From assembly GCA_965240325.2 (NCBI GenBank), contig OZ251229.1, forward strand, positions 2,604,001 to 2,668,000: DNA of 64,000 nt. The letters run 5' to 3'. The position numbers and the translations under genes are program-made. This document shows, one piece after another, positions 48,689 through 63,546 of this stretch. The notes under the pieces are model-generated. The model was given only the letters and a program-made list of their open reading frames with translations, was not told the origin of the DNA and made no database searches. The stretch is from Rebecca billardiae RCC1528. Taxonomy: Eukaryota; Protista; Haptophyta. How positions within the stretch are numbered: position 1 is the first letter of the stretch; each line of letters begins with the position of its first letter.

Positions 48689-49849
48689 CAATACGGTGAC
48701 GGTACGCAAAGCGCCTGCCGCTTTTGCCGACGACGCCGGGTCCCCGGTAGGGAGGGGCACGCGTGCAGATGCGGAGGCGGAGCGCGGCGGCGTGCGCGCA
48801 ATTCGCCAACGTGCGTGCAGCCCTGGCCATTCTCATCCGCCGCCGGTACCGCGGTGAGGGCGACGCGGGCGGCGCGCGCATGTCGGACGCGCTGTCCACT
48901 GAACACGTCGCGCGCTGGGACGCGCGCGTCGCCGGGCTGCGCGCGCTGGAACTGCGCGATGAGCCGTTTGTGGACCTGGCGCGCCTCGCCGTGCACCCGC
49001 ACGAGGCCACGCGCCCCGGCGCGCGCGCGTCCGCGGCCTCGCACCCAAACTGCGAGACGCCGGCAGCGCTCGACGCGTGCCTCGCGCAGCTGCGCGCGCG
49101 GCTGGCGAGCACGCTGAACGACGTGGACGAGGCGCGCAACGCGGAGCGCCGCGCGGGTCACGCCGCGCGTCGAGCCGCCCCGCGCGCGGCGCGCGACGGC
49201 TGCAGGAGTCTACGCCGTACAGTCGGTTGTGCCCTGCGCCGCTCGCTCCGCACCTGCAGACCGGTGGGCCATCCGCGGTGCGTGCCGTTGCCGCGCCGTC
49301 GTGCCCTAGGGCCGTGCGCAGCGACGACTGCATCGACGCGCGCCTCGCCGTGCGCCTCGGTGGGCCTTGCAGAAGTGCCGCGCTGCCGCGCCGCTGGCTT
49401 AATCGCACGCGCGACTGCGGCGCGCCACCGGATGATACCGTTAGTCAGCGCTGAACGGCCAACTCGTCCCATCGTCAGACCCTAACCAGCTTCTCCGTCG
49501 CGTCCTAGACGCGCTGTGTTCGACCAGCCCCACCGGGACAAGGCCGCTAGGCCCCCGCTGTTTATGATGATGAGTGAATTGAGTGATGATCGGCTCGCGT
49601 CCGGACGCGCGCATCATCACGCTGCTCGTCGCGCCCAGATTCCGCTGCTCGCCATGATGACGAACGAAGCACGGACTCCTGCAGGCCGATGTGCTCAGCG
49701 GCGCGCTTACTGCGTCGGCGACAGGATCCTCCATCAGCTCCCGCCCCTGGCCCTGTCGCAGCAGGGCACGGCTGAGGGTCACACCCGCTGATGGCCGGGC
49801 GAGACCAAGCATCAAGCGCGCACGCATGCGCGGTCGCCGCGGCGCACTT

Positions 49850-50307
49850 GCGCGCACCACCGGAACCTCAACGGTCTTCTTGCGCGTCATGCGGATGACC
49901 TGCATTGCCCTGCAGACGGTCGGCGCGCTGACGCTCAGGCCATACCACAGCGCAAGGCGTGCACACGTTTGGGCCAGCGTGTCTCGCGAGTACATCGTGA
50001 CGAGTGCTTTCAGCAGGAAGAGCTGGGGCAGGTCAAAGATCGGCGGGCCAGAGGACGCGACGCCACCCGACTGCGTGCTCACGATCTGCTGCGTCGCGAG
50101 GTACTCCCGCACCCACTTGAACACGGTCGATTTGGCGACGCCCGTGAGTCGAGCGATCTCGTCGTACGTGCACGACGAGTTGCCCGCGCGCAGTCGGAGG
50201 GCAGTCCCCACGACGCGCTGCCGAAGGCACACGTCGTAGCTCCTACCCTGTCGGTACACGCCGTTGTGCGCGTTGACTGCGATCCGCGGCCGTGGCTCGC
50301 GCGGCAT
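49850..50307 (-). pseudogene. IS630-type transposase, N-terminal HTH region only
   Basis: GRSYDVCLRQRVV..YDEIARLTGVAKSTVFKWVREY..TLAQTCARL..VSAPTVCRAMQVIRMTRKK. No intact DDE domain follows. Confidence 0.8.
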
Positions 50308-51173
50308 CTCCTGTCGCCGCCGATGCCCGCCGCCGCGCGACGCGGTGGGCAACGGTCTTTCTTTCCTCTCCAAGAAAACTTTTTCAAAACAAAACTTGAA
50401 ACACGTTTTGAAAACTTAAGTTTTGTTTTGTTTTTTTGAAACACGTTTTGAAAACTTGTTTTCAAAACGTGTTTCAAAAAAACAAAACAAAACAAGTTTT
50501 TCGAAAACATGTTTTCAAAAAGATTTTTTTCCAAAACCTGTTTTAAAAAATGAAAAAAAGTTCAAAAAACAAAACAAAACTTGCAAAAACGAAATGCATG
50601 TTTTCAGTTGCCCAAAATCGGTAATATGCAGAATCTCGTTTCAGTTGAATGGCGGGCGATCGTCTTTCGTTGAAACGGTGTTTTTGAAGCGCAGTTCTCT
50701 TAAGAGAAGAGGGATGCGTCTAATCTAAAACGCTGTTTTTCAGAAGCGCGTGAATCAAAGCTGACGACCCAACCTATCGTTTCTATGGTTGGCGAGCTGT
50801 TTCAGGCTCTTACAATTCAGGCATCTGTTACTATGACGGAATGTTCTAACACACGGCTGGTGTTATGTGCTATTCCACTCTGCATTCCCCTAAGTGTTAC
50901 TATCGTTAAAATTAAGGGGCAGTACAAACGCAATCATTGCGGCAGCGATATCCACTCATACGCGGTGGCCACCTACCGAAAAATCCCCAAAATCCTGCGC
51001 GCATCCTCTTTTTGATTTTGCGGAGCACGTGCGCCGCCCCCCCCCCCCGGCTTTCGCTCACGCTCAGACCTTTCGGGGGGGGGGGGGGGGGGGGGGGGGC
51101 GTGCGCCATAATAATAACACTGCATCATGCTGCGCGCAGCTTATTTAATTTTTCATCAGTGACTATCATCGTT

Positions 51174-51177
<4 letters not shown>

Positions 51178-51212
<35 letters not shown>
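51178..51212. repeat. (TA)n microsatellite
   Basis: Seen directly. Confidence 0.95.
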
Positions 51213-51216
<4 letters not shown>

Positions 51217-51415
51217 TATATATTAACGACATATATCATGAAATAGCACGCACGCAGTGATTATATATGAATCGTGTAATGATGGTGACGCGATGATGAT
51301 ACGGTAGTAGTTTGTAGCAGTCGTATAATATAGCAGCAGTAGTATTACATCCGTCAACTGAGTCTGATGATGACTGCCGACATGGCTGATGAGTGATGTG
51401 ATGATTATATAGTAG

Positions 51416-53947
51416 TTAACTCGCCGTTGTAGTGTGGTTGTAGATGCGTAAGTAGTTGAGCAAGCGCCCGTAGCGCGCCTGGTCGTCGGCGTGCTTCTTT
51501 GCCAGGTTCGACAGCTCCTGCACCTCCGATGCCTGCGGACATGCGCGCCAGACGCGCACCACAGCGGCAGCGGTAGCAAATGTGAGCAGGCGCGCGGCGT
51601 GCACGGCGTTCACGAACGGCGCGCGACCGCACGCGCGCGCAGCTGCGCAGCGGGGGACGCAGAGTGCGTGTGCCGCGCACCTGGATGCACCGTTCGCGGA
51701 TGTCAGGCACCAGCGAGGTCAGGCGTCCGAAGTACGCCTTGTCCAGGCGGAGCACGTAGCACGGGTCGGCAGCAGACACTGTCGCCTGGCGTGCTCCTGT
51801 GCCGTTGGTCGTGATCGACGCCTCGCCGAACACCTTCACGCCGGTGCTCGAGACGCCGTTGTCGTGCGAGGCGATGCTGCCAACCACGACAGGAACGTCC
51901 ATCGCGCCCACGAGGCTCACATCCAGGCGGCCAGAAATGAAGACGTAGAGAGAATCGGCGCGTTCCCCTTGGCGCATCACGACCTCGCCGACGTCCACGG
52001 ATCGCAGCTTGAAGAGCGGCGCGGCCGCGAGCGCGTCGGGCAGCTTGCGCAGGTTCAGCAAGTGCGCGCGCTGCAGGAACTGCACCACAATGTCGCGCTG
52101 CAACACCTCCCGCGAGGCGGCGGGCACATCGTCGCGCTTGATGATCATCACGATGGTGTCGTCCGCGACGGCCGAGCACGTGCTGAACCGAATGAGCGGT
52201 ATCACCGCGCCGCCTTCCTCGCCAAACGTGACCGGCGGCTCGCCAGCACTCGTGCGAGCGAGATCGCGCTTGAACTTGCGGCCGTCCTGCCCCTGCACGG
52301 CACCGTGGAGCAGCACGCATGTCCAGCTGGCGGCCGAGCCCTCACGATAGATGACGTTGTGGCGCGCGTACGTGCGGAAGCCGGCGTCGCTGCACACGTC
52401 CAGCGCCTCCTCGCGCGACAGCGCCGCGAACGCCGGGATCGGCATCAGCGCGTCCACCAGCCGGTCGACGAGGGAGCGCGAGTTGCCGGCATCACCGCCC
52501 AGCAGCTCATCCGCGAGCGAGCCCTGGATCGAGCTCACGTCACCCAAGATCCCGCTCTGCCGGGCCCTGCGGACGCCGATAGCTGCGCGTGGGGCGTTGA
52601 CTTCTTGCGTCGGCGGCGCATGCTCTGCCGGTTCCCCTCCGGCGGCGCCTCCTAGTGGGCTCATCTGAGGGATCGACGTCGACCGTTCTTCGTCACGCTC
52701 TGCGGGATCGGAGGAGGAGGACGAGCTGCTCCCGCCCGCCGTGATCTGCTTCCTCACTGGAGGCATCGTCCTGCGCACGCACGCCGGAAGTGGAGGGTGG
52801 TGTGACGCACCGCGATCAGCATGCGCGGGTGGGCGCGCTCGGGCACAGTGCTCGCAAGCGCGCATTCGCCGAGCATCATCCGCGCGACGTACTCGGACGA
52901 AAGGTCAGCGGAAGACGGGCCCATGGAGGGGGCGACGGTAGCTCGATCATCAGCGTCGGTGGTCTCCCCCAGCACGGCGGGTCTGAGAATCGGACCCAGC
53001 TTCGGCACCGGGCTCCACGACGAGGGAGAGTGTGTGGAGTCGGCGGTGGCCGCCTCGGCGCCGAGCTGCGCTGCAACAAGCTGCGCAGCTAACGGCGAGG
53101 AAGCGTAAGGCCGCGATGGAGTCGGTAGCAGTGCGGCCAGGGCGGGCTGCGAGGCGCCCATGTGGCGTACACCGGGCAGCTTGGCGGGGGGGCGCTGGCG
53201 CGCTGCCGCCCATTCGTCGGACGGTAGCACGCTGCCCAGCGCGAGGCGGCCGGAGGCGTGAGCGTGGTGCGTGTTGGACACGTGCATGGGGGGGTTGGGC
53301 GCGTCGACAGCCGCCGCCAGCATCGAGCTCACGTCGGCTGGCGCCTGCGCGTAGCAGCCACCAGCGTGTCCAGCCATTGGCCCTGACGCTCGGCGTGATG
53401 ATGCCGTGCCGGCCGAGCTGCTTGCCCCGTAGGTGCTAGCACCGGGCAGTGCAGACCCGCCTAACGTCGCCGAGCCGCGATGGAAGCGCGTCCCAACCGC
53501 ACCCTTGCCGCCGCTGCCGAGCACGCCGGTCAGAGAGGCTGAGCTGCGGTGGAAGCGCTGTCCCGTCGAAGCCGGGCCGGCCGCACCATCTCGCCGCCCC
53601 AGTGCCCCGGGGTTGAGTGGCGCGCCAGACGCGCCAGCGGCGTTGTTGCTGCCGCTTCCGAGCAGTCCCGTCCCGGACGGCGTGCGTGACAGGGATGCCG
53701 GTGTGCGATGCACGCGTGAGGACCCGCCGTAGCCTGTCGACGACGGCGCGCTCGAGCTGAGCGGGGCGCCAGACGCGCCAGCGGCGCTGCTGCCGGCGCT
53801 GCCGAGCAGCCCGGTTCCGGGCTGCGCTTTTGCCAGGGAGGCCGATGTGCGACGGAAGCGTGAAGACCCGCCGCTCGTCGACGACGAGGTCGCGCTGCCG
53901 CCCCCACCGGCTGACCTCGTGCCCGCCAGCGCCGGACGCTGCATCAT
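51416..53947 (-). CDS. Tandem cyclic-nucleotide-binding domain protein with long disordered N-terminus; introns 52771-52892, 51533-51680
   Basis: CNB-A: VIYREGS..VLLHGAV..FGEEG..RFSTCSA. CNB-B: VMRQGERADSLYVFISGRL..FGEASI..RQATVSA. The splice phases are consistent. Confidence 0.85.
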
Positions 53948-54636
53948 CTTGACCCGCGTATGGAGGCGGATGGCCCAGCGTCGCGTGAGACCACGCGATT
54001 GGTCAACCGGCGGCGGAAAGATCGTGAAGCCCCCGCGTGTTGATGAGATTCCTCACCCCTGCAGGCGAAGCCGCGAAGATACGCAGGCCGCTGCCACCGG
54101 CTAACTATTGATTTTCCCCACGCCTAGCTACCCAGCTGCTGCTTGATGTTCCTGTTGATGACCTGAACACTCTACTTTACAAGTATCTGCTGTTACATGA
54201 GCTAACCCCGCCGTAAACTTTAACTGTACACCGAAATAGTAGCAGTATTCCGCGCGCGCGCGATTGCCGATTGTCGTCAATGTCATCAGGTGCATCTAAT
54301 CTCCAGTAACGGTAGATCACCCCCCGCTCTGCGAGGAGCGACGACCCGCCGGGGGCGCCGCCGGCCGTTACATGCACGTCGTCATCGATTATGATCGCCT
54401 GCTGCGCTGAGGATAGTCCTTTTAATACTCATTCTATGATGATTCAGTAACGACATGCAGCAGTGAATAAGCATTAGATATAAGTAGAGACGCACACAGC
54501 TAGTATTATATACGCATTATGCTGATGGCATAATCGGCTAGCTGCTGGTCACTCATGACTCAGTCCGAAGTGTGACTCACAGCCCAGTCAGTCGTGGAGT
54601 ACTTAGCGGTCATAGCGGTCTCTCCCCTCGCAGACC

Positions 54637-54691
54637 AATTCTATGATTTAAAGACACAGGCACGAGGGCGCAGCTCTCCTGATTCGTCTGT
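54637..54691 (+). repeat. Dispersed 55-bp repeat, copy 2
   Basis: Identical to 30263-30317. Confidence 0.9.
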
Positions 54692-54720
54692 AGTGGGACC
54701 GCCCTGACGGTCTCGTCGGA

Positions 54721-54723
<3 letters not shown>

Positions 54724-54756
<33 letters not shown>
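54724..54756. repeat. (TA)n microsatellite
   Basis: Seen directly. Confidence 0.95.
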
Positions 54757-54759
<3 letters not shown>

Positions 54760-54920
54760 AAGTATATGCGCTGCCCAGGCTCAGCGCAGCAGATGCTACT
54801 CTGCTCGTCGTCATATCCCCGTATTCGTCACTTCGTCCTCCGGATTCGTATCGTCGCGTATGCGCGCATGTTGCGTGGCGCGGCTGTCCTCGTCATCAGC
54901 GTGCCACGGCCAGCGCGTCA

Positions 54921-57900
54921 TCAGCGTGCCACGGCCAGCGCGGCGGCGATGCGCGCGGCGCTCCGCCTCGCCTTGCGCGCGATCGCCGACTTGCGCCGCG
55001 GCGCCGAAGCCTCGACGGCGGCGACGCGGTGGAGCGGGAAGTCGACGAGCGCATGGCAGCCCGTGCGCACGAACTCGCCAAACACGGCCTCGGCCTGGCC
55101 CCGCCCCTTGTCCGCCGTCGGCCAGTGCGGCCCGGCGCCGCGGCCGCTCGCCGAGCCAAACACGGCGCCGAACGCCGCGCCGTTGCGTGCGGCGACGGCG
55201 CTCCACAGCTCGACGGCCGGGTCGGCGGCGGGCTCGTCGAGCAGTGCGCGCCACTCGACCTCGCTCACGCCACTCGGCCGAGGCATGCCCGCGAGCGCCG
55301 GCTCGAACTCCAGCGAGCTCGGCTGGAAGGCGGTGCCGCGCTCGAGCGCACTCGCTCGAATCGTCGCGCCTGCGGCCGCGGGCGCCGTCGTGGCCGCACT
55401 GGCATCCGGCGCCGCGCCCGCCGGCTCGCCGAGCACGAGGCCGAGGTGTGCGCACCAGAGGTAGCGGCGCAGCGAGGTGGCGAACGACTCGCCCTGGATG
55501 CGCACGCCGATCTCTTCGTCCTGGTCGCCGGCGAGATCGCTGCCAGGTCGAACGCGCGGCGCGCGGGTGGGGCCGGGTGCGCAGCGTGTCACGCGCGCGC
55601 GGGCGCGAGTGCGCGCGCGCACGCCGCGGCCTCGAGCGGCGCGCGCGGCGCGCGGGGCGCCGTGCAGCGGCCGCACCATGTGGTGAGCTTGGCCGTGCCC
55701 GCGACGACGACGCGATCGTCGGCGATCGCGATGCGCGAGAGCACGCTCACCGCCCTCGCGCACGGCCCTCCCTCCGCGGGCGCGCACGCCCGCAGCGAGA
55801 AAAGCCGAAGGAAGTCACCGGGAGCAGCCACGCCGCGCGCCCTGAGCTCGGTGAAGATGGAGCCGAGGCAGTCGAGCGCGGCGCGGTCGGGCGAGCCGGG
55901 CTGCGCGTCGTCGGCGGGGAGCGGCAGCAGCAGGATCGCGCGGAACGGCGCGCCCAGCGAGTGCGCGAGGCAGATCCGGTCCACTAGCGCTTGGGCAATC
56001 CGGTGCTGCTGCGCGGCGCCGCCGAGCGCGCCGCTGCTGCTGCCGCCCGCGCCGGTGCCCACGCCTCGCGCGGCGTGCGCGCGCGTGAAGGAGGGCCGCT
56101 GCGAGCGCGGCTGGCCGGGCGCGCCGGCGTCGGCGGCGTGCGCGCGGGGCGGCTGCTCGGGCCGCTCGACCGCCGCCTCCACCAGCGAGCTCTCGACGTA
56201 CACGAACCGCTGCGCCGCGGCGATTAGCGAGACCAGCGCGTCATGCAGCGAGGTCTCGTGCGAGCAGCCGACGGACCACGCCGCCGCGGAGCGGACGGCC
56301 TGGCACGCGAGCTCGCCCTGCAGCTCGGGCGGGACGTGCCCGGGGAGGAAGTCCGGCGCGGGCAGGAGCGGCGGCACCGGCGCGAACGCGGGCGGGCCCT
56401 GCGCGCCCGCACGCCCGCCGCGCGCGCCGCTCGCCGGCGAGACCGGGCCGGGCGGCGCGCGCGCGCCGTCACCCCGCGGCCACTGAAGCGCGTGGGCATG
56501 GCGCAGCCGGCCGCTGCCGGCGTGCTTGAGGCTGCCGTGGCTGAGGCTGCCGTGGCCGAGCTCGAGGGCGGGCAGCGGCTCCGTGCGCCGCACGTGGTTC
56601 CACACCTCGGCAAAGTGCCGCGAAAGGTCGCGCGCCGGCGCTGCGAACACCTCGACCGCCATCTCGTGCTGGAGTGAGAACGGCCGCGCGGCCGAGCGGC
56701 GGCCGAGCGGCGAGGCGGCGTGCGCCGCACGCGCTGCGCCGCCTCCCGGCCGCGCGGGGGCCGCGGTGGCGCTGCCGACGGGCGGGCTGGTCGGCGTGTC
56801 CGCGGTGCGCTCGCTCGACGAAGGCGAGATGCTCGGCGTGTGCGCGAGCGCGAGGCTGCTGCCGCTGCGGCTGCTGACAGCGAGGCCGCCGCTGCTGCTG
56901 CCGCCGACGGCAAGGCTGGCAAGGCCCGGCGGTGGGCGCAGCGACGGCGAGCTCGCTGACGACCGAGCGCGCCCCGCCGCGCTCGGCGGCGGGGCGTCGG
57001 CGTTGGCGGCGGCAGCAGCGCACGCGCGCTCCGACGCGGCGCGGCGCATCGGTGCCTCCGCCTCAGCGCACGCGCTGGCGGGCGCGGCGGCACTCGGCGT
57101 CGGCGACGGCTCGCCACTCCAGGCGGGCGCGGCCGTGTCTGCCTGCTCGGCCGCCGGCGCTGGCTGGGGGGTCGGGCGGCGGGCGGCGACGGGCTGCTGC
57201 TGCGGCGTGGGCGCGGCCGAGGCGCCGGGCTCGGCGGCAGCAGAGGCTGCGCCATCGGCCTCGGCGGCGCCGTCGCCGTGCGCGCCCCTCTTCTCCTGAG
57301 CCGATGCCTCGACGAGCGCGGCGGCGCTGAGCAGCGCAATCCGCTGGTCGACAATCACGATCCGGCCGCCGCGCACCGCGCCCGGCCGGCCGGCCGGCGG
57401 CGGCGCGGCGGCGCGCACGTCGGGCGGCGGCGCGGGCGGCGCGATGAGAACAGCGATACTCGGGTGCAGCTGCCGGAGCGCGTCGGCCATGGCCTGCACA
57501 CCGCCCGAGCGCGCCGCGCTCCCGCTCGGCGCGCAGCCCGCCGGCGCAGCGGCCAGCGCGCCCGCGGGCGGACGGTTGGACGGCCTTGGCGGCGTCTCCT
57601 GCGCGGCGCGCTCGGCGTCGCCCATCGCTGCTGAGTCGCGCGCCGCGCCGAAGAGGCTGCGGGCGGGCGAGGCGCCAGCAGACTGCCTACTGGAGGTGGA
57701 GGCGCGGAAGAGAGCCGAGGCGCGGCCAGAGGAAGACGCGCGGAACGAGCCGCGCGTCGAGAGGATGTCCGGCGAGGCCGGCGCCTGCCCCCAGCGCCCG
57801 CTGCCGCCGCCCGCGGAAGCGGCGGCCGCCGTCGTCGCCGCCGCCGCCGCCGCCTCGTCCACGTCGCCCTGCGTCGGGCACAGCAGCACGCGCACCGCCA

Positions 57901-60900
57901 CGCCCGCGCGCGCCTTGGTGCAGAGGAGAGATCCAAGGGTCGTGCCGCCGCCGAGCGCGAGCGCGGTGGAGACGTGCCGCGCGGCGATGAAGATCTCGGC
58001 GCGCGCGCCGCCGAGGCCGCGCGCGAGCGCGCGCAGCCACGCGCCTCGCCCCGCGTGCCACGCCGCGGCGCACCCGCTCCGGCTGGGAGCGAAGGAGCCG
58101 TGCGCGTGCGCTCGCGTCCACACGGACCGACCGTGCGCTGCGCGCACCGCGCGCAGCCACTCGTCGAGCGCGCGCTCGGAGGGCGCGGCGAGCTCGAGCG
58201 AGCGCGCGGGCGAGGTGAGCGTGAGCACGCGGGACGCGATCTCCGCCTCCGCCTGCGCCGCCGCGCACTCGCCCGTCCCGCGCCTGCCGCCGAAGAGGCT
58301 TCGCCTCACGCTGCCGCCGCCATCTGCTGCGGCGGCCTCGGCACTGCGCTGCTGCTGCTGCGCGCCGCGCGCGCCCACGCGCAGCTCAAAGCCGCGATCG
58401 AGCAGCCAGACGTCGTCGACCGCGCCGGACGCCGCGTCCGCCGTGTGGCACAGCAGGTTCGACTTGAGCACGAACCAATGCTGCTGCTGCTGATGATGCC
58501 ACGGAACGGCCGAGAAGCCGCCGCCCGCCGAGGGGGCGGCGCGCGCGGGCTCGCGGCCGCTCACGCCGAGCCGCGCCGGGCTGCCGTGGGCTGAGCCGTC
58601 GGCGGAGTCGGGAGCGCCGCGGAGCGGCGACGCGAGCGGCATCGACGGCTGGCGGAGCGACGCGCCCGAGCCACCGGACTGCCCGGGGCCGGACTTCCCG
58701 GACTCGGGCTCGACGACGAGCAGCGGGGCGCCGCGCGCCGGCGCGCACGACAGCGCGCGGCTGAGCGCGGCGAGCGGCCGCGCGGCCGCTCCGCCTCGGC
58801 GCGGCGCGTCGTGCGGCGCGTGCGCCAGCACCAGCGGCCCCTCGTGGCCCTTGTCCCACCCGTCCCGCCCGAACGAGAGCGCGGACACCTCCAGGAACCT
58901 TCGCAGCGGCGGCGAGTCCCAGCCGGCACGCTGGCCAATCAGAGCGCGGACAAAGACGCTCAGCTGCATCTCGAGCTCCGCGGCGGAGACGCCGGTCATG
59001 TGCAGCGGCGGCAGCAGCAGCGAGGCGTGCGCGCGCGCCGACGCGCCGCCGCCCGCGCCCGCATCCGCCGCCGCCGCCGCCGGCTGCGCGCGGTGCGCGG
59101 AAAGTTCCGCGGAAAGTTCCGCGGAAAGTTCCGCGCGGTGCGCGGAAAGTTCCGCGTGCAACTGGGCGAATTGCTCGGGCGTTCGCTCCACCGCCCAGCG
59201 GAAGCCGGGCGCGCGCACCCTCGGGCGGTACGCGAGGCGGATGCGGTACGTGAGCGAGCGCAGCTCCTCCGCCGAGAGCGGCGCCTGCGAGCCCGCCGCA
59301 CCCGACAGAGGCGAGGCTGCGTCGGGCAGCGGCTCGAGAGCGGGGCGCGGGCGCGCTCGGATCATCGATGCGCGCCCGTCGCTCACTGCGCGCGTGCGGT
59401 AGCTGGCGCGCCGCGGCGGCGCGAGGAGGCGGGGCTCGTGCTGGATCGGCCCGTCCTCGCTCGTCCGCGCGGCCCGCGCCGCGCCGCGCGCGTCACTCCC
59501 CGCCCGAGAGTCGCGCGCTGCCGAGTCGGAGGCTGAGTCGCGGCCATCGCCCGTCCCCTCCGCTGTCTGCGCCGAGTCGGTCGTCAGTCTGGAGTCGGCG
59601 GTCAGTCTCGAGTCTCTCTCTTGGTGCTGGGAGACGCGGAGCTGCGGCGAGCGCTCGGCGCCGCTGTGCGACCAGCGCGCGCTGGGCGTGCGCGACGGCC
59701 GCCGGTCCCACGGCTGCGGCTGCCGCGCTCGGCTGCTCTCGCGGCCGAGGGGCGTGACGCGCCGGCCAGCGCGAGCCCACGCCGAGCGCCGCGCCGCGCC
59801 TCGCTCGCGCGCGCCGCGCGGAGCGGTGGACGTGTCAGCGTCGTCGCCGGCGGTGCTGCTGCCGCGCCGGCTCGTCGGGCGCTCCGCCGAGCCGTCCGAG
59901 GAGCGGCGCCACCGCTCGGCCGAGCCGCGCGGCAGCTGCGTCACGGAGATCGTCACCTCGGGGCCGTCGAAGAGGTGGGGCGCTGGCTCGGGCGCGGCGT
60001 CGGCGCGCGGCTGCCGCGCCGGCGCGCCAAACATGAAGAGGCGCGGCGCGTCGGGCGAGCCCACGGCCATCGCGGTTCGGAGGCCGGTTTTGGTCTGGTG
60101 CCAGCGCTCTGCGAGCGGGGACATGCGCGCCTCCCTCGCCAGGTGCAGCCGCTCGGCGAGCGGGGACATCCGCTTCTCCCTGGGCGCGCCGCCGCGCCCC
60201 GCAAGGCCGCGGCCGAGCGCGCTGCGAGTGCCGGACGAAGCGCCGCCGCTGTCACCACCCTCGGCGGCGGCGGGCGGCGCGCGCGCCTCGGCGTCGGCGG
60301 CGACGGCGGCGTTGGTGCGGATCGGCGCGCTCATGCTGAGCGCCGCGCTGCCCGAGAGCGGCGAAGGCGTCGAGCCCGCGCCGCCTCCACGCCGAGCGGC
60401 GGTAGTGCTGCCATCGCCATCGCCGTCGCCAGCGGCCGCTGCCAGAGCCGCCGCCGAGCGCGCGCCATCCATGCCGTCCCCCGCGAGCGTCGCCGGCGGC
60501 CCCGGGCCGTCGTCGTCGAAGGGCCGCACGGCGTCAAAGTCCACCCGCGCACGCTGCTGCGCGGACGGCCCCTCCGACTCCGAGTCGTCCGACTCCGACT
60601 CCGCCGCCAGCGCCGCAAGTGCTGAGAGCGGCGCGGCGGAGCGCGTCGGCACGCGCGCTGGGCTCGAGGCCGCGCGCCGATCCCAGCGCGAGCGCGGCTC
60701 CGCCTCCTCCTCGTCGTCCACGTCGGGGATGGTTGGGAGGCGCTGCAGCAGGGGCGCCGAGAGCCTCGGCGCGGCCGCCGCGCCGTGCCACGCGCCGGCC
60801 ACCGGGCCGGCGCGCTGCGCCCGCGCGCGCTCCGCGTCGCGCCTGCGGCGCCACTCCGCCTGGATCGAGACAGCCGCGCGGTACGCGACATGCGACGCCT

Positions 60901-61993
60901 CCGACGAGAGGCCGGCGGCGTCGTACGCGGAGAGCTGCCGGTCGACGCGCCCCTGCAGTCGGCGCAGCGCCTCGTGCTGCTGCTGCGAGCGCTGCTCGCG
61001 CGAGAGCAGCGAGCGGCAGATCGCCTCCATCCGGCGCGTGAGCGGCCGCATCGCGAGCAGCTCCGAGGCGGTCGGGCGGCGCGCCGGGTCCTTCACCAGC
61101 ATCGCGCGGATCAGGTCGCAGAGCTCCTCGCGCTCGGCGGCCGCCTCGGGCTGCGCGGGCACCTTGACCTCCGAGTGCACGATCTCGAACGCGAGGTGCC
61201 CCAGGTTCTTCCCGCGGAACGCGCGCTGCAGGAAGACGAGCTCGTGGAGAATGCAGCCCAGGGACCAGATGTCTGCGGGCGTCGAGTACGGACGACCCAT
61301 CACCATCTCGGGCGCGAGGTAGTACGGCGTGCCGCAGATCGTCTCGGCGAGGTGCGCGGCGTTGGCGAGGTGGCGCGAGATCCCAAAGTCCGCGAGGCGC
61401 ACGAGCGCCCCGCCCTGCGTGAGGAAGACGTTGCCCGGCTTGAGGTCGCGGTGGATGATGGCGCGCTCGTGCAGGTGCTCGAGCCCCCACAGCATCTGCG
61501 CGAGCCACGAGAAGATGAGGTCCGCGTCGAAGGGCTTCGCCCCATCGAGTTGCTGCGCGCGGATGCGCTCGGCCAGCGTGCCGCCGTCCGCGTGCTCCAT
61601 CACGATGTCCAGGACGAGCAGCTTGCGATTCAGCACGCTGCCGTAATATTTGATGACATTTGCGTGGTCGAGCGACGCGAGGATGCGCACCTCGGTCGCG
61701 GCGCCCGCGAGCTCGCGCTCGTCCATCTCGCTGACGGTCAGCCGCTTCGCCACGACGTACAGCCCGGGCTCGCGCGCGTGCTGCAGCAGGAACGCCTCGC
61801 CGCTCGCACCACGGCCGAGCGAGCGGATCTCGCGGAACTCGCTCAGCGGCACGCGGCGCTCGTCGTCGCCCACGTCGAGGGCGAGCTGGGCAGCGTCGAT
61901 CGTGCTGCGCACCAGCGGGCTAGCCGGCGCCTCGCCTCGGCGAGGCGGCGCCGGCGACTCCGCCGGCGCGCCCAGGGAGGGCGTAAGCTCCAT
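54921..61993 (-). CDS. About 2310-aa NEK-like Ser/Thr kinase + IQ + PX + PH + degenerate phospholipase D; intron 55540-55676
   Basis: Kinase: LGRGASG, VAK, HANVIKYY, HRDLKPGNVFL, LADFGIS, GTPYYLAPE, DIWSLG. IQ: AAVSIQAEWRRRR. PX: WAVER..FAQLH..LRRFLEVSALSF. PH: WFVLKSN. PLD landmarks: HGSFAPSR, ARAEIFI, AAPARDLSRHFAEVWN, CQAVRSAAAWSVG, AQRFVYVES, IADDRVVVAGTA, LWCAHLG, LVDFPL. Confidence 0.88.
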
Positions 61994-62487
61994 GCGCACG
62001 TAGGCGCCCACGAGCTTCGCTGAACTTGTGGTGCGCGTGTTTGGCGTGTTCGCTCGCTCACAGAGTTATTAGGACCGGTGTGAAGATGCGTTCGATTCCC
62101 ATCATCAACATCCTCGTTGATTGTGATCATGTAAAAACTCATCCCCATACCCCCATAGTAGTATGCCGGAAAGCTAGAAATACCGTAGCATAGATGACTT
62201 GTGGCGGGCGGCGGCGGGCGGCGGCAGCCGGGTCTCGGTAGTCAATTTACCCCTTCTGGCCTTCTCCTCACCTACACAATACCTGCGGAATGTTTCGTCT
62301 TTCTATATGAGTTGGCGTGTAGTAAGGTAATTGCTTAAACCATATACAAAATGTAGCACCGATAGGTACCGAAGGCCGATGAAAAGACCGCGCACAATCT
62401 GGAAACCGACGTGTACTCATCAGCATGGCGGCGGCTGCGCCGCGGCCGCCCTCAATGCACACGTCTTTGCTGCTGCACTTGTGCTGA

Positions 62488-63546
62488 ATGAGAGCGGCCG
62501 CATTGCTCGTCGCGGTGCTATGGGCGCGCGCAGGGGCGGGTGGGCTCCCCACCTCGCCGCAGCAGCCGGCTCCCCTCGCCTTCCTCGCGATGATGAGCCG
62601 CTGGCGCGACTTTGAGCTCCGAGATGCGCTGCGCGCGACGTGGCTGCACAATCTCGACGCCGCGCACGCGCAGTACCGCTTCTTCGTGGAGGAGGCACGG
62701 CTGCTGGCGCACAACATGACGCTCGATAGCAGAGGCTCCGTCGCCGACTACGTCGCGCTGCGCTCCCCTCGCGGCACGCGCCGCGCCTGGTTCAACAACA
62801 CGGAGCAGGTGCTCGAGATGCTGCAGTGGGCGCTCACGCACGTGGCGCCCGCGTACATCGCGCGGGTGGACACGGACGGCTACCTGTGCACGCCGAGCTT
62901 CCTGCGCGTGCTGCGAGGGAGCCCGCGCGGGCTCTTCTTCTGGGGCAAATACTGGTGCCCCGCTGCTGACGAGCGCGACGTGCGCCGGTGGCGCATGCTG
63001 CGCAGAGCCGACGAGAACTTCATGGTCCTCTCCGCCGAGCTGGCGAGGCTCACGCTGGCCGGCTTCCGGGCGGGCCGATTCCGCCGCTTCTTCGGTGGGG
63101 AGGGCGGGCTGCACACCTTCGCGATGCGCTTCGGCCCCGTGACCACCGAGGTGGGCCACGTGCGCGGCCTGCAGGTGCTGGACGATCCGTTCCGACTCGC
63201 GCACCGATTCAACACGCGCGGCACGCCCGGCTGGCCGCCGTGGCGCGGCGGCACGGGCGCGGGCGGCCAGCTCGCGCCGCCGCCCGGCTGGGATCCGTGC
63301 GCGCTGGGCTACGTGTGGGTGCACCCGATCAAGAGCGCACACGCGCTGCTGTCGCTCGGCAGGCCGGGCCCAGACCTGCACGGCGTGCCCACCGGGCCCG
63401 CTCGCCCGGACGCGCCTGCCGTGGCGCCGGCAGCAGCTGCCGCTACGCCGCCGTTAGGCACACCTGCGCTTGGCCCTCCGTGCGGGTACGCTTTCGACGC
63501 GAAGATGATGCCCACCGCCAGACGAGGAGTTCGTCGCAGCCGCTGA
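62488..63546 (+). CDS. GT31 (Galactosyl_T / Fringe-like) glycosyltransferase
   Basis: Signal or anchor segment, ELRDALRATW, YRFFV, DxD motif YIARVDTDGYL, FFWG, VHPIK. Confidence 0.8.
   Translation: MRAAALLVAVLWARAGAGGLPTSPQQPAPLAFLAMMSRWRDFELRDALRATWLHNLDAAHAQYRFFVEEARLLAHNMTLDSRGSVADYVALRSPRGTRRAWFNNTEQVLEMLQWALTHVAPAYIARVDTDGYLCTPSFLRVLRGSPRGLFFWGKYWCPAADERDVRRWRMLRRADENFMVLSAELARLTLAGFRAGRFRRFFGGEGGLHTFAMRFGPVTTEVGHVRGLQVLDDPFRLAHRFNTRGTPGWPPWRGGTGAGGQLAPPPGWDPCALGYVWVHPIKSAHALLSLGRPGPDLHGVPTGPARPDAPAVAPAAAAATPPLGTPALGPPCGYAFDAKMMPTARRGVRRSR

Follow-up and report, generated by a model that had tools for sequence, protein, structure and literature searches.

Phospholipase D (PLD) proteins of the PX-PH type, which include animal PLD1 and PLD2, yeast Spo14 and the plant PLD-zeta type, are built in the order PX, PH, N-lobe, loop and C-lobe, and the catalytic His residues are needed for PLD catalysis (PMC6008594). 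The pseudo-PLD domain of FAM83 proteins (DUF1669), which is without the catalytic His, anchors CK1 isoforms to particular compartments, and mammalian PLD5 is a PLD without HKD motifs that is presumed to be inactive (PMC6008594). The reuse of pseudoenzymes as scaffolds is a growing theme, and a kinase-positioning pseudo-PLD has so far been described in trans only, namely vertebrate FAM83 with CK1. Here we describe a minus-strand gene in a 64,000-base stretch of the haptophyte Rebecca billardiae RCC1528 (contig OZ251229.1, positions 2,604,001 to 2,668,000; hereafter the window, in whose coordinates all positions are given). In this gene, a NEK-type kinase and a PX-PH PLD body with altered HKD motifs appear to be parts of one protein. 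We consider it probable, at roughly 0.6, that the product is a NEK kinase followed by a disordered stretch of about 500 residues that tethers it to a complete PX-PH pseudo-PLD; the latter would serve as a membrane- or lipid-binding or docking module.

The predicted protein appears to keep the domain order of the PX-PH PLDs and shares with them the collinear blocks SFAPxR, RHFxxxWN, QxxRSxxxWSxG and FRxxxxxPL and the C-terminal EHLG and GHLVxFP, and human PLD2 and PLD1 are its best matches in both sequence and fold. It differs from them in that neither HxKxxxxD motif survives, erosion has reached most active-site blocks and Pfam PLDc gives no match even at E 10, as well as in its N-terminal kinase, its very long disordered inserts and its terminal branch, the longest in the PLD tree. 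With NEK kinases it has in common an N-terminal kinase domain, an intact catalytic apparatus and the GTPYYxxPE signature, whereas its C-terminal PX-PH-pseudo-PLD partner was met with no kinase in our searches. The likeness to FAM83 lies in a PLD-fold domain, deprived of the catalytic His, that is proposed to direct a Ser/Thr kinase to a particular site in the cell. In FAM83, which is confined to vertebrates, there is only one pseudo-HKD lobe and CK1 is bound in trans, whereas in the present protein a NEK would be covalently joined to a PLD1/2-type body that has both lobes as well as PX and PH. No match to Pfam DUF1669 was found in the whole open reading frame (ORF) or in its pieces, and the protein resembles FAM83 in proposed function only. 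PLD5, a membrane protein of the PLD3/4 type, has neither PX-PH nor a kinase. A complete PLD1/2-type body that has lost catalysis, kept its fold and been built into a NEK would thus join two known kinds of protein, a NEK kinase and a PLD-family pseudoenzyme, in a combination that appears new among the databases and literature searched.

The gene probably consists of two exons and would encode a protein of about 2310 residues. The minus-strand frame from 62011 to 55589 runs for 2140 codons without a stop. Each of the five remaining frames is interrupted by 8-30 stops, and base composition gives a chance of about 1e-10 for such an open frame. The first ATG is found at 61993 and the stop codon, TGA, at 54923-54921, so that the two ends given in the initial annotation (61993 and 54921) agree with the sequence. 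Kinase and PLD had been placed there on one 6.3-kb exon. This holds for the kinase, the linker, PX, PH and most of the PLD body, all coded by exon A, but not for the C-terminal region of the PLD, which lies in exon B behind a short intron (Table 1). Without splicing, the long frame stops 29 codons past the GT donor at 55676. Removal of the intron joins ..GTAKLTT to ..DLAGDQDEEIGV.., which gives a GSAN-RDSE spacing of 13 residues, exactly as in canonical PLDs, and the spliced frame runs on through the C-terminal PLD blocks FAxxLRxxLxxEHLG, the DP..W..A..N region and GHLVxFP. Exon B carries QDEEIGV, FATSLRRYLWCAHLGL and CHALVDFPL; aligned by itself, it corresponded to the C-terminal parts of 13 homologues. 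Each exon was analysed on its own. Most of positions 55592-55660, inside the intron, can be read as a degenerate repeat, either (CG)n or of 27 bases. At 54891-54942, the stop codon is spanned by a 25-base unit in perfect tandem duplication (2.1 copies), so that the TGA and its context are doubled; it looks very young and lies at the 3' end of the coding sequence.

NEK signalling is linked to the cell cycle and to cilia. The kinase domain sits at the N-terminus of the predicted protein, and its translation contains the VAK Lys (VVAK), HRDLKPGN, DFG and GTPYYLAPE. Its best matches in the PDB were NEK1 (1.2e-49), NEK7 (about 1e-41) and NEK2 (about 1e-37), followed by the next kinase families, GCN2 (5e-35) and MST (about 1e-33). 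In a word-indexed protein database, every match to which a source had given a kinase-family name was NIMA-related, NEK1_4_5, Nek5 or Nek11. The top identity to any NEK in that database was only 38-45%, indicating that it holds no close orthologue of the kinase. As judged from best matches and family names, not from a kinase-family tree, the kinase is closer to NEKs than to any other kinase family. The Pfam match, the complete set of catalytic motifs and NEK1 as the best PDB match bear out the initial description of an intact NEK-like kinase, and the enzyme is apparently active.

The assignment of the rest of the protein to a PLD1/2-type scaffold was confirmed by phmmer, in which human PLD2 was matched in four collinear segments (E 3.4e-14). 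An exhaustive HMMER search with the PLD piece gave 287 PLD matches among 1.84 billion representatives, the best at 3.8e-24 and 33% identity, and a feature search of the ESM Atlas returned PLD1/2-type clusters only, at 0.92. AlphaFold, given an alignment with 46 homologues, modelled the cores of PX, PH and both PLD lobes with confidence, at a predicted template modelling (TM) score of 0.68; 335 residues reached a predicted local distance difference test score (pLDDT) of at least 90, and a further 568 residues were disordered inserts. Foldseek placed this model onto the catalytic domains of PLD2 and PLD1 (2e-15, target TM about 0.55). The part of the C-lobe coded by exon A includes RHFxxxWN, QxxRSxxxWSxG and an eroded IYIENQFF. 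By these comparisons, the fold is of the two-lobe PLD1/2 type with collinear blocks.

Family profiles detected little of this body. Pfam reported only the kinase in the whole ORF, and only a sub-threshold PH in isolated pieces. The same scan of eight aligned homologues found PLDc in 8/8 (in two stretches in seven of them and in one stretch in the other), PX in 5, PH in 5 and all three domains in 4. The naming of the body as PX-PH could be upheld for PX and, less firmly, for PH. PX had no Pfam match and is supported at the profile level only, by hhalign against a PX profile of five homologues (probability 92%, E 8e-7), with a model pLDDT of 85-93. For PH, Pfam gave a weak match (E 0.0024; 18.8 bits, below the 25.1 cut-off), the region aligned with the PH domains of homologues, and Foldseek placed this part of the model onto PH domains (E about 1e-3, TM 0.62-0.66). 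Inside PX, a perfect 12-base repeat of 3.3 copies at 59096-59135 encodes, in frame, AELSAELSAELS, where model confidence is low; a folded domain has here undergone a recent expansion resembling that of a microsatellite.

The losses in the PLD body fall on its catalytic blocks. In the alignment with 18 homologues that have intact HKD motifs, the altered strings reported in the initial annotation, which are present in the sequence, occupied the columns of HKD1 and HKD2. The HKD1 block WAHHEKxxxxD..GGxDLxxGRxD reads AVRGGRIVIVD..SAAALVEASAQ, with GGxDLxxGRxD lost, and the HKD2 block YxHxKxxxxDD..GSANIN reads SVLSRIAIADD..GTAKLT. Erosion extends over the blocks GGxDL, IENQFF, DYSN and GSAN(I)N, and IYIENQFF, for example, reads VYVESSLV. 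When the 120 ungapped columns conserved at 85% or more in 46 homologues were examined, 69 were kept in the present protein. Retention was 10/45 (22%) in the five active-site blocks, which were delimited by hand from known PLD motifs, as compared with 59/75 (79%) elsewhere (Fisher p 1.3e-9). The possibility that splicing restores the HKD motifs, raised along with the initial description, was checked and ruled out: HxKxxxx[DE] is not encoded in any of the six frames of 54800-62100, so no alternative exon could restore the motif. The PLD body has probably lost the ability to hydrolyse lipid.

Table 1. Positions of the parts of the kinase-PLD gene in the window
Feature	Position	Strand	Remarks
Exon A	55677..61993	-	ATG to GT donor; 2105 whole codons and 2 bases; 6.3 kb
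NEK-type Ser/Thr kinase domain	61052..61834	-	ORF residues 60-320; Pfam Pkinase 2.1e-55
IQ-like string IQAEWRRRRDAERA	60824..60865	-	Unsupported as IQ motif
Low-complexity Ala/Arg/Ser/Gly-rich linker	59282..60814	-	ORF residues 400-910; 510 codons; disordered
PX domain	58871..59278	-	ORF residues 912-1047; ends FLEVSALSF
Probable PH domain	58127..58480	-	ORF residues 1178-1295
PLD N-lobe	57272..58114	-	ORF residues 1300-1580; disordered insert; phmmer to PLD2; core pLDDT > 90
HKD1 remnant VRGGRIVIVDQR	57341..57376	-	His to Gly, Lys to Arg, Asp kept; MAFFT columns against 18 homologues
PLD C-lobe, exon A part	55677..56689	-	ORF residues 1775-2111; phmmer segments 2-4 against PLD2 and PLD1
HKD2 remnant SVLSRIAIADDR..GTAKL	55685..55747	-	His to Leu, Lys to Arg, Asp-Asp kept; GSAN reads GTAK
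Intron	55540..55676	-	137 bases; GT..AG; 86% GC; read straight from sequence
Exon B	54921..55539	-	About 618 bases; PLD C-terminal region, basic tail, TGA

In the reading that we prefer, the dead PLD body, together with PX and PH, would act as a membrane- or lipid-binding, or protein-docking, module, and would place or gate the kinase at a particular membrane. Such an arrangement could be regarded as a cis equivalent of the vertebrate FAM83 pseudo-PLD domains that anchor CK1. Arg in place of Lys at both motifs is a conservative change, Asp is retained, and the GSAN block has gained a Lys; such a pocket may still be able to hold an anionic phosphate head group, although this is speculation. A ciliary role of the kinase-PLD protein, suggested in the initial annotation, is not supported beyond a guess, made because of general NEK biology and because in Chlamydomonas a PLD is a ciliary membrane-associated protein (PMC3628507). 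In a more specific form, which we hold tentatively and consider rather unlikely, PX, PH and the dead pocket would together form a reader of phosphatidic acid or phosphoinositides that recruits or allosterically switches the NEK; the kinase would be lipid-gated, possibly at the flagellar or haptonemal base, and be one member of a small gene family specific to the lineage. Should the protein itself prove to be fused, this would tie NEK signalling, and with it the cell cycle and cilia, directly to membrane lipid identity, and would offer a natural system in which to study the role of a PLD fold deprived of its chemistry.

Several points weigh against the tethered pseudo-PLD. We infer the single mRNA from sequence statistics only. 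Both PX and PH fall under the Pfam thresholds, and the AlphaFold model provides no independent evidence for the homology, since PLD homologues supplied its alignment. Moreover, the terminal branch of the present protein, the longest among 47 aligned PLDs, measures 2.30 as compared with a median of 0.52. It points to a strong acceleration, which could include some neutral drift.

At 200-base resolution, the GC content is 0.66-0.84 across the gene (54900-62000) and falls to 0.45-0.55 at both flanks, 54000-54800 and 62000-62400. Coding and intergenic GC differ sharply in this genome, which helps to delimit genes. Within the gene, the third codon position had the highest GC content (GC3) in 200/211 sliding 40-codon windows, and codon periodicity was significant in every segment tested, including the linker and two large inserts of the PLD body. 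It is unlikely, although the least so of the alternatives, that the architecture is right and exon A is nevertheless split by short, stop-free, in-frame introns lying in the low-complexity inserts. A few 40-codon windows (ORF residues 501-560 and 931-1000) have their highest GC at another codon position than the third, and composition cannot reveal such introns, because the known intron is as GC-rich as the exons and introns here are separable from exons by codon periodicity only. Hidden introns are nevertheless hard to reconcile with a periodicity that is significant in both large inserts as elsewhere, and there is no break in homology that calls for an intron beyond the one found. Exon A is thus more probably without further in-frame introns.

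We regard it as quite improbable that the continuous frame yields two products, a NEK kinase and a separate pseudo-PLD, through an internal promoter or cleavage in the linker. The length and low complexity of the linker would suit this view, as would the fact that the fusion is seen in no database protein. However, the linker keeps a frame-specific GC3 bias (GC at the three codon positions 0.77/0.71/0.90; chi-square p 5e-13) and has no in-frame stop in its 510 codons, in contrast to 1-7 in the other frames, and a stand-alone PLD gene would not need 1.5 kb of upstream sequence in frame with the kinase. Furthermore, between the kinase and PLD halves there is neither a dip in GC nor an AT-richer, intergenic-like stretch, unlike at both flanks. 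Since the open frame is continuous, the linker has codon periodicity and nothing intergenic-like separates the halves, a single transcript appears the better reading.

That the PLD half is a functionless, decaying relic behind a working kinase, open only since stops are rare at 78% GC, seems very unlikely to us. It would account for the longest branch in the PLD tree, for the lack of PLDc, PX or PH matches above the Pfam thresholds and for young perfect repeats within coding sequence. On the other hand, with as many stops as the other frames carry, any frameshift would soon terminate the protein; it is mainly the active-site blocks that have suffered losses; canonical PLD spacing and C-terminal motifs are still obtained from the intron and last exon; and AlphaFold models the cores with confidence. 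Over some 4.2 kb, the PLD-coding DNA keeps an intact frame and its codon-position bias. Taken together, the site-specific catalytic erosion, the kept fold positions, the intact frame and the splice geometry suggest a retained pseudoenzyme and not neutral decay, as had been argued in the initial annotation. Finally, it is scarcely credible that the PLD body is still an enzyme in which non-canonical residues act on a lipid or nucleic-acid phosphodiester, for although the fold, both HKD Asp residues and a basic residue (Arg) at both Lys positions are retained, the nucleophile and general-acid His residues, on which PLD catalysis depends (PMC6008594), are replaced by Gly and Leu, and the GGxDL, IENQFF, DYSN and GSAN(I)N blocks are eroded.

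Searches for relatives of the tethered pseudo-PLD gave no second example of its architecture. No close relative of the PLD piece was found among the 1.84 billion proteins, which is weak evidence, as the protein did not match itself there and the proteins of this genome are evidently outside the library. The best 150 PLD relatives had the kinase motif HRDxKxxN in no case (0 of 150), and two HKD motifs in 122. A word search for long fused relatives returned none with the PLD region, where low-complexity words probably swamped the candidates, and only unrelated multi-domain kinases with the kinase region. One candidate for a fused relative, P0001, was rejected as a multi-kinase repeat protein with no similarity to PLD. 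Metagenome scans found nothing with the C-terminal half of the PLD and nothing close with the kinase (best match 39% identity, on short contigs). An exact-product look-up of the unspliced ORF gave no record, no paralogue was present within the window, and full-text literature searches found no description of a kinase-PLD fusion. The architecture, of which no described protein had been known when the locus was first annotated, was accordingly found in none of the databases and literature searched. Family scans of the Pfam kind miss proteins of this class altogether and report the kinase only, so that similar proteins may hide in other protist genomes.

Among the PLD relatives, P0073 (1079 aa; from a Logan contig of 4046 bases) is a PX-PH-PLD in which Asn replaces the His of HKD1 (HNEK) and the Lys of HKD2 (HSN). 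As compared with the present protein, it has no kinase and retains enough of the motif to be matched by Pfam PLDc. It seems to be a further, independent example of a PLD1/2-type protein that is probably inactive.

The initial annotation had also named an IQ motif together with the kinase and had linked the kinase to Ca/calmodulin. We found no Pfam IQ match in the whole ORF or its pieces, and the full consensus [FILV]Qxxx[RK]Gxxx[RK]xx[FILVWY] has no match in the ORF. The half motif [FILV]Qxxx[RK] occurs 3 times as compared with 1.45 expected in shuffled sequence (P = 0.18). The IQ motif was therefore not supported, and neither, with the motif at chance level, was the proposed Ca/calmodulin link.

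Just downstream of the gene, the AT-richer intergenic stretch (0.45-0.55 GC) contains an (AT)16 microsatellite at 54724-54756. On the other side, a plus-strand ORF of 352 codons (62488-63546), for which Pfam gave no match, is arranged head to head with the kinase-PLD gene at a distance of about 490 bases from the ATG of the latter; a bidirectional promoter region may serve both. In the downstream direction, the ORF at 52754-53947 comes first, followed by the minus-strand ORF 51405-52865, which encodes a cyclic-nucleotide-binding domain (Pfam 3.3e-13). Farther along the same strand, the ORF 49441-50373 has weak, sub-cut-off helix-turn-helix matches (HTH_29, HTH_23) and adjoins the lowest-GC stretch of the window, a dip to 0.53 at 50001-52000; it may be a transposon remnant.

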